From Selaginella moellendorffii (taxonomy: Eukaryota; Plantae; Lycopodiophyta): DNA of 64,000 nucleotides. The number at the start of each line of letters is the position of its first letter. The first letter of the stretch is position 1. The DNA lies in the NCBI RefSeq assembly GCF_000143415.4, contig NW_003314302.1, positions 768,736-832,735 of the forward strand, read 5' to 3'. The notes beneath the pieces were generated by a model. It saw only the letters and a list, made by a program, of their open reading frames with translations, did not search any database and was not told where the DNA came from. Shown piece by piece: positions 4,244-15,630 of the stretch. A program made the translations under genes and the position numbers.

Positions 4244-5247
4244 ATCTGACTATTAGACTAAGATCACTAAACTTTTATACATTTTGGATATTTACTGCTA
4301 ACACTTATCCCCCAAATCGAGTGCTTCTCTCACTGATAGTAGTAAATTCCAGTAGTCATCAAAATTAATTTTAATTTACAGTTTGAATCTTCAACAAGTT
4401 CTAGTACCACCACCGCAAGCTTGTCAAATCTCGTAGTACTTGCACAGACGAAGCCCTCTGCTTTGACTGGAGAGCAAGAAAACGAAGAAAAAAAAAACCT
4501 GCATCCCTACTTGCTTCTGCAGCTAAAGAACTTTGGGCAGCAAACACCGCCCAATCCACCCTTGTCCCCGACGCAGCAGCAGTTCCTCCACAATTCAACA
4601 CGACTAAAGAGAAAGAAGCGATCTTCCAACGTTGATTTCGCCAGCCTAATAAGATCTGAAACGCAGAAGAAAGAGTTCTAATGTACTCCTCTGTGTTGCC
4701 TCCATTCGCATTGAAAACCAGGGCCCAAACAAATCACGGTGACAAACTCCTGGCATCTAAGCCCACACGGTTTTAAACCATGAACACTTCTGGCTCACCA
4801 TGTTGTGTTCTGTACAGCAGCTGCCAAAGCGACCTGCTTCGTTATATTCTAAGAAAAACAACCAAGAATCGTTTAAGCACCTCTGTGCACGAGCTGCAGC
4901 TCCCTGTTCCTTCTCAAAAACTTTTAGTAGAAAGGAGCACTCAAATTTGTAATATGACGGCTTCAAACAACCTATCCCTGCCTTGGTTAGTATGTAAATA
5001 TAATACAGGTATGGCAAGAGGGCCATTTCTCTTCTCTTTATAACACCAAAATGCTTCGAGGTGTAAGTTGCTCCAGCTGCTGAGAAACTGGGAAAGCAAT
5101 TCAAACCATAAGTAAGCTTACTTGATTTGGATGGACGCCGTACGCATTTCCAAAGAATCTCTCCAAAAAACATTGAGAATACGTCCACAGTATATAACAA
5201 GCGTAGAGTTTTGTTGCTATTCAAATCTGAGATTCTTACAAACCAGA

Positions 5248-7288: not shown

Positions 7289-8251
7289 CTAACCAATTGC
7301 CTTCCATAACACTGTACGAGTTTCTAAATTATAAATGAAAACATTTCCTTCTCCTTTTACCACTGCACTTGCCATCGCAAAACAATTTAAATGCAACCTA
7401 CAATCCACATTAGCTTCCCAGAAAACATGATTTGCAGGGCTCTTTATCACAAGCTTTCCATCATACTGCAAATGTGCAAAGCATCCACTGATAGGATCAT
7501 AAGAATGCTCACTAATCCACAAGATTAGACCATCTATTTTGCGAATTAACACCAGCTTGCAGTTCTTCTGTTGCATGGTGAGTCTATATAGTCCATTTAC
7601 TGAGTTCAAACTATTTCCAGCGGGAAGATATGATCCTGAAACTTTGATATGATTGCTTATGATAGATGATCCAAAACTCCAGCAATCACTTATATCATGG
7701 TTACTTTGTTCTCCGGTGACAACACTATCTAATCTTTTAGTACGCAAATTAGTCTCTGGTGGCATGTATACGAGTTGATAGTGTATGGCAAAATTTAAAA
7801 ATTCTGTACGTATCTCAGCACAAAACGTTACTCTAGTTCCATTGTCATACATAGCATCTGTGAACATCTGACTCCTGATGTAGCTGAATGCTTGCCTCAC
7901 TAGGCAAAACGAAATGGTATGGATGGATCAGCCACACAAATACGAATAGAATCAACATATAAAAGTGGGGCAGTGATGTGAAATGAAATCCTCACCGATA
8001 TCGCTCCCAAAGAAAACACAGAAGAGCTGCTTCCAACTCCAAATGTATTATATACTCCATCGTCAGCATAAACAACATCAATACAGTTATCAATCATGTT
8101 CATAACTTCTCTAAACTCTACTAGTGATAAGGCCTTTTAAGCCTACACTGAAGATGGTTGTGGGCAGAGCAGGATACCAGTGTGGCGGGGGCTGACCAAA
8201 ACTAGTCAAAACTAAAGCTAATAATGCAAAGGTGGAGCAAATTGAGAACAT
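7289..8251 (-). pseudogene. Secreted unknown-domain + B-lectin family member with two frameshifts
   Basis: Three consecutive ORF pieces (8111-8251, 7900-8103, 7289-7900) are collinear with the 14255-15229 protein: PPP-WYP, YADD, CVADP, FCAEIRTEFLNFAIHY, CWSF, GNSLNSVNGLYRL, HLQYDGKLVIK. Confidence 0.85.
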
Positions 8252-8667: not shown

Positions 8668-10753
8668 TCAGTTTAGTTTCTTTTGTTTCTTCTTTTTCCT
8701 CTTAGTTTTCCTCTCTTCGATTTCACTCGATTTCCTTTTGCGCTGCTGCTCAAAAGTTTGGCTCCTTTCTCTCACGAAAAGAGCGACGAAAAAACCATCG
8801 GTTTTGTCTCGCAAGGCATCCGTCCGCAACAAATGCTGCGCTGAGCATTCCAACACAAGGCCTCAGTTCCTTTGGAGAAGCAAGAAGAAGAGTTTTGATT
8901 TACCTCCATCAAACACTGGAAGTCCTCTGTGAGGCCAATTTGGAAGAACAGTCCCGAGCTTGAATTTGTGAGAGCGAGCGTGCTCGAGCACGGATTGGAC
9001 GACATCTTCGTTCTCACGCTGGTTCACCGAGCAAGTGCTGTATACCACTCTCTCCACGGCAGGAACTGGGAAAAAGAGACCAAAGACTTAGCCTGGAAAA
9101 ACTGAGAGACTGGCTGCTTACAGGACAATGCGTGACACAGAGCAGCCTTTTGGAAACTGGCTAACCGATCGATCCTTTGAGCGTCATGTTGAAACTCCGG
9201 ATCGTCTGGAAACTTTACAAGGGCATGAGATTATACAACTGAGAAAACAAATGACTGACCGTTTGCTACTGGAAGCAAGTGATCCATTCTTTGCACTGTA
9301 GTCCCGGAGCCAGAGCAAGACGGGTCCAACAAGATCGCACGAACCTGGAAACCATTTTAAAACTTTTTCCGCAAGAAAAAAGAAACGAAAAGAAACAGAG
9401 GAGACCTTCCTGTAGTCCGACGCGTTTGGATCGAGTTTAAGAAAGTCCTGATGCTTCACTTGTATATCTTTCAGAGTGTTGTCTAGGAAAAAACGACGGG
9501 TTTTTCAGCACAAATAGGAAGGATACTGTTTGCTCCGGCACGTTTGACCGTGTCTTGCAGCACCTGGAGGCGTTTTTTGTGGAGCTCGCAAGCCGTAACC
9601 CGACCTTTTCCTTTCATCAGAGCAGCCAAATGCACGGTTTTGTTCCCAGGAGAGGCACAAGCATCCAAAACCTCGAGAACAAAACACCATAAACTTGAAG
9701 AATAAGGAGGAGAAAAAAAGTTTAAGATAAAAGAGTACCTCCCAATCTGGATCTGGGGAAAGAACATGTGCTGGAATACAACTTGCTTTGCTCTAAGAAA
9801 CAAAACAACGAAGAAAAAAAGCTCTTAACACTGAGAATTCAGCTCAAGTAAATGAGTCACCTGTAGGAAAATGCTACCTTGTAGCACAAGAGAATGGTCG
9901 TGCAAATCCGTGCCGGGCGGAAGCACAAGCAAGTCAGGAAGCAACTCGTCAACCTTGGCCTGCCAGCTAAACAATGTCAAAACGGAAAAAGATCTCACGA
10001 AGAAAACTTACGCCAAGTTCTTCAAGCTTCTCCAGAGCTTCGTCGACTGTTATTTGCAGAGTGTTCACTCTCACGTATCTGGGAATGTCTACCAAAATCG
10101 GTTTGAGGCGAGATATGAATGAAAAGATTGAAACAAACTTACCACAAGATTGTAGCTGTCGACTTTCTGTTGGCAGCAACCCATCAATCTCAGTGACATT
10201 TTTCTTCATCATCAGCCTCACAAATGCTGCTCGAAGTGCTGCCTTTCTCGACAGCACAAAGATTTCTTCTTTTCCCGACGGCAAAATCTCCTGTGTCCAA
10301 CGTAGAATCACGAAAACTTCAGTATCATAGCACAAGGAAAAGAAAAAGGAATTGACTTACTTGCTCAAAGAGTAGATCATGCGTGAGCACATAGAAAAGT
10401 TCATCCTGACCCTGGCGAAGAGAAACAAAGAACTGATAGAGAGAAACAAACACTCAAACCTTGTTTTTCCTTCCTTGAAGAAGACCCACAGAATGCACGA
10501 TGTCCTTGATCACGGGAAGATCTGTGAAACACATTTTTTACACGCGAAAAAGTTCAAGGAGACAAGTCCTCTTACATTTGAGAGTGTTGCAAATGAGAGC
10601 AAGGGTAGCCTTTTTCGCGACGATGGAAGGCTTGTAGACGAGAGACTTGATAGAAGCGAGCGCCCTGTGCTGCGTATTGCCCGCCAAGACTTGCCTGAGA
10701 ATCCGAGCTACCTGGCGGCGCACAAAATGCAGCGCGGGCTTCTTAGCTCCCAT
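8668..10753 (-). CDS. NSUN5: 25S rRNA m5C methyltransferase NSUN5/Rcm1-like, multi-exon
   Basis: PRYVRVNTL, VLDACASPGNKTVHLAALM, ILLDPSCSGSG, VVYSTCSV..ENE and TDGFFVALF motifs; basic C-terminal tail. Confidence 0.93.
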
Positions 10754-10802
10754 AACATTTAGGGCGAAAATTTTGCTCTATGTATTGAAAACATCATTTC
10801 TT

Positions 10803-11614
10803 TTACAGCCTTCCACCATTCTTGACGAGTTTCTGGATTGAATATAACAAATTGCTCGCTTCGTCTTTGATCATAAGATTCCCATCTTGTTCGAGGTGTG
10901 CAATGCATCCACTCACAGGTTTGTGAAAATGCTTGGGTAGCACCATCTGTTTTTGTTAAGACCAACTTGCAATCCATGCACAGTGTCAACCTGTAAAGCC
11001 CATCTAGAAGATAGGATCCTGGAATTCTTTTTGGATTTCCAACAAGACAACACCTGAAACTCCAACAATCACTTTCTTTGCTCGCTAAGATGTGCTATAG
11101 AAACGTGGTGATTGTGATCCATAAGCTACATAATAGTTTATAGCAAAATTTAAGTGTTCTGTGCGTATTTCAGCACAATATCTTATCTCTCCGTCTGCTG
11201 CCTGAGACCTGCCATCGATACCCATCCGATTTCTAATGGAGAGAAATGTTTTGCTTACGTACTGGGACGAGAAACGAAATGGCAAAGAGGGATCAGCAAT
11301 GCAAATCTCAAAGTTTGTTCTTATTAGCAGGGGCGCATGGATATGAAACTCAACTCTAATTGATATAGATCCAATCGGAATCACAATAGAGGAGCTTCCT
11401 ACCGGAAAAGAGTTTAAACCATTGTCATCAGCATAAATCAGATTAACATGATTAACTATTTGCTGGACAATTTATCAAAGTCTGACGCTCCAAGGCCATA
11501 CAAGCCAGACACCCAGCTTGTTGATGGCTCCTCAGGGTATGAATGTGATGGTGGAGATTGGCACAAGGCAGGAGCTAGTGTAAAGAGCAAGAATTTCAAG
11601 AACACATGCATCAT
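10803..11614 (-). pseudogene. Secreted unknown-domain + B-lectin family member with multiple frameshifts
   Basis: ATG 11614 gives MMHVFLKFLLFTLAPALCQSPPSHSYP. Frameshift near 11470. YADDNGLNSFPVGS, CIADP, YCAEIRTEHLNFAINY, then DCWSF, GLYRLTL and HLEQDGNLMIK in shifted frames. Confidence 0.85.
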
Positions 11615-12153
11615 TATCTAATTACTCTTCTTATGCTTTTCTATAACACAACATTCGTTTAATTGTCTTCTTCTTGACTGAACGATATTTGGCTGGTCTT
11701 ATGTTTATTCATAAAAGAAGGACAAGGCAGGTTAAAATAGTTATGGGAGGCCTGACCAAACTTATAGTGCAAGGAGGAGAAAAGGCCAATAATAAGAAAA
11801 AAGAAAAAAAGAAAAAGGTTCTTTCAGCAAAATGTAAGTGTAAGTTTCATCTAATAAAAAATAATAATTTGTCAATGTTAACTACATCAACAATTATTAT
11901 CACAATGAGTATTGTATCCATTCATAGTGTAAGGTTCTGCATTGCTGATGAATTTGCCTTCCACTTTAGTGGCTAGGTCCATCACAAACATGATGGAATT
12001 GATGAAGATCTTAAATCCACATTGAATTGTTCAACTTTGCTACAATATAATTAGTGTGATAAGGTGATTCTTTTTGTCATCAAATTAAGTCTTGTAAGAC
12101 TTTAATTATCTATTCTTGATATATCTTATATTTAGGTAGTTCCTTTAAAAAAA

Positions 12154-12485
12154 GTGACAACATGTTACTCAACATGAGTAGGAAGTGGTAATTTTTTTAT
12201 TGTCTATATCATTTTTACTTTGTGTTTTCTGTAAAGAAAGAAAAAATGGGAAATAAGGAAGAAGTGAGAAGAATGGAAAAAGAAAATAACTAAGCATGTA
12301 AACTGATAGGTAGTCTTTAGTTTAAATTAGTTCTTGTTTTTAGCTCTTTGTATTGTGCCATAAAAGGATGAAGACAATAAGTAAAAAGGAATCAAAATGC
12401 TAAATTACAAAACGAAAAGAGAAACTTTGGTTCAAATAATAAGAAAATTACTATTTCCTTCTCATATTGAGCAACATGTTGTCAC
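12154..12485. mobile_element. MITE / non-autonomous DNA transposon with ~45-50 bp terminal inverted repeats
   Basis: Left end GTGACAACATGTTACTCAACATGAGTAGGAAGTGGTAATTTT versus the reverse complement of the right end GTGACAACATGTTGCTCAATATGAGAAGGAAATAGTAATTTT. AT-rich noncoding interior; no clear TSD. Confidence 0.7.
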
Positions 12486-13305
12486 CTCTCTTGCTTCTTT
12501 TTATTGTTTTTCAGCATCATAATGGCATAGTGTTTTTTTCTAAATCCTAAGTCCACATCAAAGAACTAAGACAGCTGGAAAACTAAAGTCCTACAGGATC
12601 GGAGCTTCAATTTCTCATTCTCTAGTGCATGCAGTAACCTGTCATTATCAAGGTTTTGCAACTATTCTTCAAAAGTCTATATAAAATTTCAAATGTGATT
12701 TTTGAGGAACTAAAAGTCTACCTGGTATTCCCTAGAAGAATCCATTCCCACCTTTTAGCATTGTTAACTGGAAAATGCAAACAGTATTGGAAAAAAACAG
12801 CATACAAACAACTTAAGATTTCATGGTTGTGGATTCTAATTCTGTGCTGATTTAAGGCCAACTTGTCAAAGAATTTGTTAACCAGAAACTCCTTCTAGGG
12901 GACAGATAGCTTGCACACCTATGGGTTGTCTTCCTCAAGATGCTATATGGCTTGTCTTCCTCAAGATGCTACCCTCGTCTGCATCACTAAATGCATCTTC
13001 GTCTTTCTCAATAACCATACCGTCATTGCTATGCATCTCTAAACAAATGCCAATAAACAAAAGCCCAAAACAAAAACAAAGATCAAAACCCCAAAGATGA
13101 GCAACCAATTTATAAACAAAAGCCCAAAACAAAAACCGCTGCTGTGCATTTTTAAACAAATGCCTGAGCTTCCTTAAAATCTCTCGGTGAGCCCGAGCTT
13201 CCTAAGACTTTGGAGTTGACATGGACTGAAGAAAGGGGGAGGTTTTAATTCAAGTTAAGAAACCGCTCCAAGAAGTTGATATCAATTAGTCAAGTTAATT
13301 TTTAA

Positions 13306-13974
13306 TCAATTGCGCTGCCTTGGCTTCCGGGGTTCTTCCAGCCTATAAAATCCTTTGAGTTCTGTCTTCCATCTAAACACCTCGTCTCTTACACTCTTGT
13401 CCTTGAAAACAATCCTTATGGGCTCGGGCTTTCCAAACACTGGCTCTCGCAATTGCAACCTCTCAGTCTCCACAATCCACTCCATGTCAAACTCCTCTGC
13501 CTTGTAGCCCAGCCCGTCGTAGATCACGCTCGCGACGTGATCCCGCAGCTCCTCCTCGTCCTGCTCGTCGCTCTGGAACCAAAGCCGCGGAGCAAACAGG
13601 ATCAAGCTCCGCTCCCAGCGCTCCCACGCCTTGATCTTGTTCATCTCCTCCATCTGGGAGCGAGTGTAATCCTCGGAAATCGCGAATCCCAGCTTCCGGG
13701 CTTCCTCCTGCTTGCCTAGCAGGTGGCTCCGCAGCTTGGAGCCGGCGGCAAATTCGACCAGGATGTCGCGAGGTCTCCTTCGATCCTCGATCTCGCGGCC
13801 AAGCCTCTGGGCGCTCTCCTTGATCTTCTTCGAGACGGTGACCAGGCCCAGTTCCTTAAGGATCGCCTCCACTACTTGGCCAACGTCCTCGCCTTGCTGC
13901 TCCGCCACGCCTTTGAAGCGGAGGTTATTGGCGCGCCTCTCGCGCTCGGCGGCTTCGTCCCGCGACTGGACCAT
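13306..13974 (-). CDS. Intronless protein with two tandem LINE ORF1p-like (RRM-type) modules, no ORF2
   Basis: RRANNLRFKGVAE..ED...V..IL.ELG...AQRLG....RPRDILVEF...R..LL......GFAISEDYT is the typical metazoan-type LINE ORF1 pattern. A second degenerate copy follows (ERSLIL...GLGY...ERL...KPEPIRIVFKD..RDEV). First ATG 13974; TATAAAA at 14013-14019. Confidence 0.7.
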   Translation of the reverse strand: MVQSRDEAAERERRANNLRFKGVAEQQGEDVGQVVEAILKELGLVTVSKKIKESAQRLGREIEDRRRPRDILVEFAAGSKLRSHLLGKQEEARKLGFAISEDYTRSQMEEMNKIKAWERWERSLILFAPRLWFQSDEQDEEELRDHVASVIYDGLGYKAEEFDMEWIVETERLQLREPVFGKPEPIRIVFKDKSVRDEVFRWKTELKGFYRLEEPRKPRQRN

Positions 13975-14254
13975 GGTTGACTGGGAGGTTTCGAGCTTGG
14001 ACCGGACGTGGCTTTTATAATTGAAAACTTGACTTTTCTTCCACGGCACATCAGCCTTTTTAATATTAGAAACATTAAAAAATAACTTAATTTAGCTTAA
14101 TAATTAGAAAATTTATAACGACAAATGAATTAATTTAAATATCCGGAATATTCTAATATCTTTAATAGACAATTGTGAACAATACAAAATTAATTTACCA
14201 TTTAGTTGTTCTCTAAATCCGTCACTATATTCTTTTTTTTAAGTTTTGTGAACA

Positions 14255-15229
14255 ATGATCCACTTTTTGATTGTTTTGCTGATTTTTATTTTGCAAAAGT
14301 TTGCTCATTCTTTAGTTCCACCACCACCCTACTATTCCAATCCCACAACAGTTTTTCAACTGGCTTCAGGTGCATTATCACCAGAGCAATTCGAAGATGT
14401 AATTCGGCTCATTACAACTCACTACGCTGATGCTACTGGGCATAATCCTTACAACCTTTTTCCAGTGGGAAGCACATCAGTGGAGTTTCATATTGGTGCA
14501 ATGACACTCAGGATTACATTTTATATCAACGCCCCTGTTGTTGTTATGTTTTGTGTTGCAGATCCCTTAATAGCAATTGGTTTTCCCTCCCATTCAGTGC
14601 GAACCACTTTCAGAAATATCAGAAATCAGATATTTTCAGATGCCTCGACTTATATTAGAGGAAGGCGGAGGTTTTGTGCCGAAATACGCACAGAATTCTC
14701 AAACTTTGCCATACACTATCGAGTAAACTTTGGTGTTTACCAAGCACAAAACTATGGTATGGCCTTTATTTCTCAGACACCCAAGGTAATTAGAAATACG
14801 TCTAATGTGATGGAGGATGATATTGCTGGAAGTGAGTGTTGGAGCTTTGAATCATCACTTATAGGGAATCAAAACAAAGTTCCGGGGTCTTTTATTCCAG
14901 CAGGAAATAGCTTGAACTCGGTGAATGGGCTTTACAGGCTGACCCTGCGCATAGATTGTAAGTTGGTGTTAATTGAGAAGAGCAATGGAAGAATTTTATA
15001 CTTGAGTAAGCACCCTTACAAGCCTATTGATGGATGCTTGGCCCATTTACAGCAAGATGGGAATTTTGTGATTAAAAACCCTCAAGATCATCCTTTGTGG
15101 TCATCTGATATATATTGTAACCCACAACCCAATTGTGTTATAACAGCAAGTTTAGTGGTGAGGGGCGATGGAAATGTTTTCATTTTTAACTTTGATACTA
15201 AAGAAATAATTTGGAGAGCTATCGAGTAA
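14255..15229 (+). CDS. Intact secreted protein: signal peptide + ~150-aa unassigned domain + bulb-type lectin domain
   Basis: 324-aa intronless ORF with hydrophobic N-terminus. C-terminal GNSLNSVNGLYRLTL.DCKLVL, HLQQDGNFVIK..LWSS and VRGDGNVFIF..IIW form a B-lectin fold. Confidence 0.85.
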   Translation: MIHFLIVLLIFILQKFAHSLVPPPPYYSNPTTVFQLASGALSPEQFEDVIRLITTHYADATGHNPYNLFPVGSTSVEFHIGAMTLRITFYINAPVVVMFCVADPLIAIGFPSHSVRTTFRNIRNQIFSDASTYIRGRRRFCAEIRTEFSNFAIHYRVNFGVYQAQNYGMAFISQTPKVIRNTSNVMEDDIAGSECWSFESSLIGNQNKVPGSFIPAGNSLNSVNGLYRLTLRIDCKLVLIEKSNGRILYLSKHPYKPIDGCLAHLQQDGNFVIKNPQDHPLWSSDIYCNPQPNCVITASLVVRGDGNVFIFNFDTKEIIWRAIE

Positions 15230-15333: not shown

Positions 15334-15630
15334 TTACACGCAAATCCTTTTTAGGACAAGAACAATCCTGTCCACCATCTTCTCAATCTTAACAATCCTT
15401 TGGGAGAGCTCCCTCTGATATTCCTCAATTTCTTTCAATTTCGCGTCAAAACATGCCTGCACCTCGTTGCTGTCATGCTTTCCACAATCAGCTCCAAATC
15501 CTAAACTTTTCTCAAGGTTGTCAAATCTCGAAGTACCACCACATAGATCTTTTACAAGCTTGTCAAATCTCGCAGTACCGCCATTACTATCAGAAGCAGA
15601 TTCAATCCCCAGCCTTTGTAATGAATCCAT
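15334..15630 (-). other. Unassigned short coiled-coil ORF / possible terminal exon
   Basis: 98-aa ORF with internal repeat GGT(A/S)RFD(K/N)L and a heptad-like C-terminus; shares a ~24-nt motif with 4416-4439. Confidence 0.3.

Follow-up and report, generated by a model that had tools for sequence, protein, structure and literature searches.

Gene organization at the locus

The window analysed here, the whole 64-kb stretch of Selaginella moellendorffii DNA, carries on its minus strand an uninterrupted ORF of 222 codons at 13306–13974 (ATG at 13974, codons 13309–13974, stop at 13306–13308). The exact 222-aa protein is an annotated product of S. moellendorffii (GCA_000143415.2, scaffold GL377606.1), and the ORF is single copy within the window. 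Its frame is open from stop to stop over 13309–14091. An upstream in-frame GTG at 14049 would make an ORF of 247 aa, a start that is irrelevant in a eukaryote. An earlier, sequence-only reading of this DNA had described an uninterrupted GC-rich frame amid AT-rich DNA, and this is borne out by composition: G+C is 0.59–0.61 in 13400–13999 and 0.30–0.40 in both flanks. By codon position the ORF has GC1, GC2 and GC3 of 0.63, 0.36 and 0.76, and its GC3 exceeds the values of three host genes in the window (0.58–0.65) and, by a wide margin, that of the neighbouring lectin-like ORF (0.35). The features discussed below are as follows.

Features of the locus (window coordinates)
13306–13974, minus strand: intronless coding sequence, 222 codons plus stop (annotated P0001); from ORF calling, intact on both haplotypes
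13630–13968, minus strand: module 1 (residues 3–115), ORF1p-type RRM with linker and start of the CTD helix; from the query-free profile, AF2 and Foldseek
13585–13662, minus strand: long helix (residues 105–130) between the modules; from AF2 secondary structure (H105–130)
13351–13569, minus strand: module 2 (residues 136–208), a second, diverged RRM-like module; from the profile, hhalign and shuffles
14013–14020, minus strand: TATAAAAG motif; from the sequence, kept on both haplotypes
13975–14254, no strand: AT-rich 280-bp spacer (31% G+C) to the divergent lectin-like ORF; haplotype divergence 4.3%

A TATA box had been placed about 40 bp upstream of the gene. The motif TATAAAAG does occur 39–46 nt before the ATG, and the second haplotype has it unchanged, although it is weak evidence by itself because TATAAA is common in the AT-rich DNA of the window (about 0.6 per kb per strand). 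A sigma-70 promoter scan was discarded as not applicable to a plant. The 280-bp spacer is a possible promoter region common to the ORF1-like gene and the lectin-like ORF.

The lectin-like ORF (14255–15229, plus strand) is intronless, 324 aa long and has a signal-peptide-like start; it faces the ORF1-like gene head to head across the 280-bp spacer and is not itself a called gene. Its match to B_lectin is weak (E 8e-4, below the Pfam cut-off), and paralogous pieces of it lie at 7319–7992 and 10956–11178, both on the minus strand. On the other side, the DNA downstream of the ORF is repeat-rich and rearranged between haplotypes. Short direct repeats occupy 13027–13164, where the other haplotype has one unit deleted, and an 88-nt inverted repeat pair of MITE-like appearance lies farther downstream of the gene (12147–12234 and 12405–12492, 73% complementary, 170 nt apart).

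Origin from a type II LINE ORF1

A phmmer search of 1.84 billion representative proteins with the ORF translation returned 47 matches (E 7e-7 to 9e-4), all on residues 3–115. Most of the aligned matches have an N-terminal coiled coil, then an RRNNLR-G-E/HR-G/PRPILVKF-type block, an I-EDLT helix and WT-DG strands, and a coiled coil–RRM–CTD layout is common to them. The type II class of ORF1p, with coiled coil, RRM and CTD, was defined by Khazina and Weichenrieder (2009) and is summarised in PMC4120745. A family profile built from 46 homologues, with the query left out, matched residues 3–115 at 93.5 bits (E 8e-31), and the profile of the aligned phmmer matches led to human LINE-1 ORF1p (2yko, E 2e-16) across coiled coil, RRM and CTD.

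Structure prediction gave a similar picture. With the family alignment, AF2 modelled residues 1–125 at pLDDT 85–98, and the ten best matches of this model in a Foldseek search of the PDB were all human L1 ORF1p chains, with a TM score for 2w7a of 0.60–0.68 when normalised by target. The AF2 model made without an alignment (pLDDT 39) was unusable. Comparison with L1 ORF1p structures had been suggested in the sequence-only reading, and both the family profile and the fold lead to that protein. At the level of Pfam, the alignment, which comprises the query and 46 matches, has 4 of its 47 sequences matching PF02994 (Transposase_22) and 4 matching Baculo_FP_2nd. Clusters of Baculo_FP_2nd and Transposase_22 at 0.85–0.88 in the ESM Atlas were treated as a lead only.

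Taken singly, the ORF is far less expressive, and one might suppose that its resemblance to ORF1p is spurious and that it is an unrelated orphan. Even with E relaxed to 1, no Pfam family matched it and it fell below the PF02994 gathering score, a single-sequence PDB search gave no match, and a word-based homologue search returned only the ORF's own protein. This supposition is refuted by the 47 independent phmmer matches converging on one region, by both profile results and by the Foldseek matches, and we give it next to no credence.

Homologues are also found directly upstream of an ORF2 with endonuclease (EN) and RT domains (loci L004, L005 and L003, the last from Riccia sorocarpa). Because the phmmer matches, the query-free profile, the match to 2yko, the Foldseek results and the EN/RT-linked homologues agree, we regard an origin from type II LINE ORF1p as secure; judged from sequence and modelled fold, the ORF almost certainly descends from the ORF1 of a LINE whose ORF1p belonged to the human L1 ORF1p class. 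The LINE-ORF1 derivation claimed earlier is thereby upheld and its class specified as type II (Transposase_22-like). The features of plant type I ORF1 were sought in the ORF translation, which gave no Pfam match (DUF4283 and others) and has no Cys/His knuckle. Among the ORF1p homologues, P0043 (330 aa, from NCBI/ENA contigs) has a PHD finger at its N-terminus, in agreement with the type II variant with PHD finger described for CR1/L2 elements (PMC4120745).

Two modules and lost domains

Module 1 has the same non-canonical RRM and first CTD-region helix as type II ORF1p (PDB 2yko/2ldy/2w7a; PF02994) and keeps all ten near-invariant residues of the family (R14, G22, E25, E29, R57, G59, R69, I71, D102 and T104). 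It is basic, with a pI of 9.3 (family median about 10), whereas module 2 is acidic, with a pI of 5.0.

The existence of a second ORF1p-like module, which had been recognised from the sequence, is supported by profile methods. The query-free profile that gave 93.5 bits on residues 3–115 also matches residues 136–208 through profile positions 122–191, at 13.7–16.6 bits (E about 3e-7 for a single target), and these positions are the same as in the module 1 match. None of 3000 shuffles of the C-terminal half scored above 4.1 bits, and hhalign aligned this half with the family alignment at 88.5% probability over 84 columns. In the AF2 model the order of helices and strands in module 2 fits an RRM, but at low confidence (pLDDT 40–69). 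Compared directly, the two modules do not recognise each other (BLASTP not significant; Smith-Waterman P 0.49), and the duplication is therefore visible through the family profile only. The tandem RRM is unique to the Selaginella protein among the 48 family members examined.

The protein is shortened at both ends relative to its family. The profile match to module 1 begins at position 101 of 268, and the coiled coil is absent; upstream of the ATG there are just 25 in-frame codons from the GTG, or 39 in the stop-to-stop frame, while 43 of the 48 family members begin in the coiled-coil part. At the other end the match breaks off at position 212 of 268 and does not extend into the CTD strands, with the first CTD helix alone matched (40 of the 48 members extend to position 225 or beyond). 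Helix 105–130 corresponds to the first post-RRM helix of the ORF1p family, and the second RRM-like module occupies the place of the CTD strands. Set against type II ORF1p, then, the Selaginella protein keeps the hallmark residues and the profile and fold matches to L1 ORF1p, but it has two RRM-like modules instead of one, lacks the coiled coil, the CTD strands and a downstream ORF2, lies below Pfam detection and resides in a lycophyte.

A 98-aa ORF lies 1.3 kb upstream (15337–15630, minus strand), with a coiled-coil-like C-terminal part and no Pfam match. It is the second-best six-frame profile match in the window, at coiled-coil positions (E 0.29, not significant). Because of this E value, and because the lectin-like gene intervenes, it was not counted in the gene.

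A stand-alone ORF1

When three LINE ORF2 proteins were used as tblastn queries, neither the 64-kb window nor the second-haplotype locus (L002) yielded any EN or RT, and no poly(A) run follows the ORF stop. The gene is thus stand-alone, as had been claimed. No convincing terminal inverted repeats or target-site duplication were found around the ORF; a 16-nt inverted pair near it was rejected as being at chance level.

These results bear on the suggestion that the ORF is a member of an unrecognised repeated element, either an ORF1-only non-autonomous LINE (compare mammalian HAL1) or a gene fragment captured by a transposon. The sharp compositional island does suggest inserted DNA, and the repeat-rich downstream region, rearranged between haplotypes, would also suit this suggestion, which implies further copies elsewhere in the genome. 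However, the ORF has a single copy in the window, is without flanking terminal inverted repeats, target-site duplication or poly(A), and occupies the same site on both haplotypes. Nor was any close paralogue found among 15 billion predicted proteins, the annotated Selaginella proteome included. We consider membership in a repeated element improbable.

Type II ORF1 in liverwort LINEs

The sequence-only reading had taken the ORF1 motif to be of a metazoan type. This holds in part: the type is not limited to metazoan LINEs, with ORF1 of this family preceding EN/RT in two liverworts. In Riccia sorocarpa (LINE region L003:10000–14400, CM100799.1) a family ORF1 at 10644–11417 is followed by a decayed endonuclease at 11489–12312 and an RT at 12656–14384. 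Calypogeia fissa (LINE region L006:4715–8374) has a fragment of ORF1 at 4715–5158 (E 2e-23), separated by 1.9 kb from an RT gene downstream of it. Sequences related to the Riccia RT abound in Riccia itself and are also present in Calypogeia and in a fern, Adiantum nelumboides.

The liverwort ORF2s match Exo_endo_phos_2 (PF14529) and show no zf-RVT domain, suggesting that the elements may not be ordinary plant L1 or RTE. An attempt to place the Riccia RT through PDB matches found R2 and L1 ORF2p about equally close, and the element was left unclassified. The same Riccia sequence holds a 2413-bp unit repeated in tandem at 100% identity (L003:4469–10465), which contains the N-terminal part of ORF1 and an endonuclease that shares just 37% identity with its downstream counterpart. 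Gene model P0032 (417 aa) spans this array as a chimera, and a double RRM match in Riccia was dismissed as a chimeric gene model over the tandemly duplicated locus.

Published surveys report only type I variants of ORF1 (DUF4283, zf-CCHC) for plant L1 (PMC5203782) and only L1 and RTE among land-plant LINEs (PMC9033089). Since type II is missing from these surveys and yet seen in liverworts, the elements seem under-described. The presence of type II ORF1 upstream of EN/RT in liverworts makes a plant LINE source possible for the Selaginella ORF.

The liverwort LINEs and the Selaginella ORF have the ORF1p domain family and a land-plant host in common, and the Selaginella module is 23–41% identical to the liverwort ORF1s. 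The liverwort elements retain all of the parts lost here, from the coiled coil and CTD to EN and RT, and Riccia has them in multiple copies. The closest pairwise matches of the Selaginella module (32–38% identity) come from metagenome or sequencing-run contigs. When the RRM modules were placed in a tree, the Selaginella sequence had a long branch and fell outside the liverwort clade, but a single clade of plants was not rejected (AU p 0.37); the tree supports a claim neither of plant monophyly nor of animal affinity. The Selaginella module is thus not clearly kin of the liverwort LINEs.

Second haplotype and possible signs of selection

A protein 90% identical to the 222-aa product is annotated on scaffold GL377600.1 (EFJ21035.1 / SELMODRAFT_417634). 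Both loci are flanked by the same HAD/acyltransferase gene, RRM_1 gene, NSUN5 and TP_methylase gene, and EFJ21035.1 is therefore the allele on the second haplotype. Its 249-aa model (L002:10001–10957) includes a spurious intron after codon 193; in the DNA of GL377600.1 the 222-codon frame is intact, with stop and TATA motif as in the first allele.

Between the alleles there are 11 substitutions, of which 5 are non-synonymous and 6 synonymous, and no indel in 669 bp. The resulting dN of 0.0097 and dS of 0.042 give a dN/dS of 0.23, a ratio that rests on these 11 substitutions. Divergence between haplotypes is 1.64% in the ORF, compared with 2.94% substitutions and 254 gapped positions in intergenic DNA of the same 20-kb haplotype pair; the immediate flanks of the ORF reach 4.3% and 4.6%, with many indels. 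At the intergenic rate 15.3 non-synonymous changes would be expected where 5 are seen (Poisson P 0.002). The synonymous excess has a binomial P of 0.019; simulated with the 9:2 transition bias of the actual substitutions, it has a P of 0.085, so that the P for purifying selection spans 0.002–0.085 depending on the null model. A reservation on these values is that mutation and indel formation may be slower in GC-rich unique DNA than in AT-rich spacers.

Word-based and phmmer searches, covering 15 billion predicted proteins, found no orthologue in another species. Look-ups of the exact proteins of both alleles returned the genome annotation record only, with no transcript or run assembly; they are uninformative on expression because two would-be control genes were also blank.

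A neutral relic would account for part of this evidence. The ORF would then be a LINE ORF1 fragment from which deletions took the 5' coiled coil and everything downstream, its frame would be open by chance, and the JGI gene model would merely reflect an open frame. Consistent with such a history, the coiled coil, CTD strands, ORF2 and tail are all absent, module 2 is barely recognisable, and neither an orthologue nor a transcript record was found (with the look-up blank for the would-be controls too). An open frame is also not demanding at this divergence: among random sets of 11 substitutions the probability of any stop is 0.34, and the frame stays open in about two thirds. Nor does the test for purifying selection reach the 0.05 level once transition bias is taken into account. 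A relic fits less well with the dN/dS of 0.23, with non-synonymous change at one third of the intergenic expectation, with zero indels beside indel-rich flanks, and with the retention of every hallmark residue in module 1. The extent of the preserved DNA points the same way. The GC-rich homologous block coincides almost exactly with the ORF, and no other part of a LINE occurs in the 64 kb. Insertions made by TPRT preserve the element's 3' end rather than ORF1, and a block that matches the ORF so exactly is therefore unexpected from random deletions. We see a neutral relic as a real possibility, albeit one we lean against.

The allele comparison, with its low dN/dS, lack of indels and non-synonymous change below the intergenic rate, is suggestive of domestication, although the counts are small. 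It is plausible, and in our estimation an even call, that the plant has kept the ORF as a domesticated gene. The domestication put forward in the sequence-only reading thus gains from the allelic ratio and from the comparison with intergenic DNA, and is held back by the small counts, the simulation P of 0.085 and the lack of an orthologue. The degenerate acidic module 2 and the loss of the coiled coil and CTD strands could equally be decay.

Comparison with domesticated ORF1 proteins and proposed function

The closest parallel to a domesticated Selaginella gene is L1TD1 (PMC4161310, PMC11014241, PMC11925450), which likewise is stand-alone, derived from ORF1, furnished with duplicated ORF1p-like modules and without an ORF2. 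Orthologues of L1TD1 occur across mammals, and its expression and RNA binding are documented, whereas for the Selaginella ORF the corresponding evidence is the allele comparison; the Selaginella ORF also has an independent origin, in a plant, a much smaller protein (222 aa) and a far more degenerate second module. A precedent for host-level reuse of LINE ORF1 outside animals is the EKA/AVRk1-AVRa10 effector family of powdery mildews, which evolved from a LINE ORF1 (PMC4641428). These are fungal, multi-copy effectors with a different ORF1 type, unlike the Selaginella ORF.

We tentatively propose, at somewhat below an even chance, that a lycophyte independently domesticated a type II LINE ORF1p as a small tandem-RRM RNA-binding gene, a plant counterpart of L1TD1. 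The source LINE lineage would then have an ORF1 type that surveys have not recorded in plants and that is EN/RT-linked in liverworts.

We hypothesize that the Selaginella protein is a small RNA-binding protein in which module 1 would bind single-stranded RNA through its ORF1p-type RRM surface, with the basic RRM and the long helix as the binding part. Lacking a coiled coil, it could not form the ORF1p trimer that packages LINE RNA, and we therefore propose a monomeric tandem-RRM mode of action. Such a protein might serve as an RNA binder or RNA chaperone, or as a decoy that hinders the assembly of LINE ribonucleoproteins. The acidic, degenerate module 2 could be a structural partner of module 1, or provide an interaction or auto-inhibitory surface. 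Transcription may start in the AT-rich spacer common to the divergent lectin-like ORF.

If the ORF is a neutral relic, it is the trace of an extinct or rare LINE lineage and of modest interest. The surveys' picture of plant LINEs (PMC5203782, PMC9033089) is broadened by the type II ORF1 seen in Selaginella and in LINEs of liverworts. In the literature L1TD1 is presented as the sole case of a protein-coding gene domesticated from L1 (PMC4161310, PMC11014241). If domestication in Selaginella is true, it would be a second, independent domestication of ORF1, in a seed-free plant, and the RNA-binding module of ORF1p would be reusable more than once and in a different layout, as a monomeric tandem RRM without a coiled coil.
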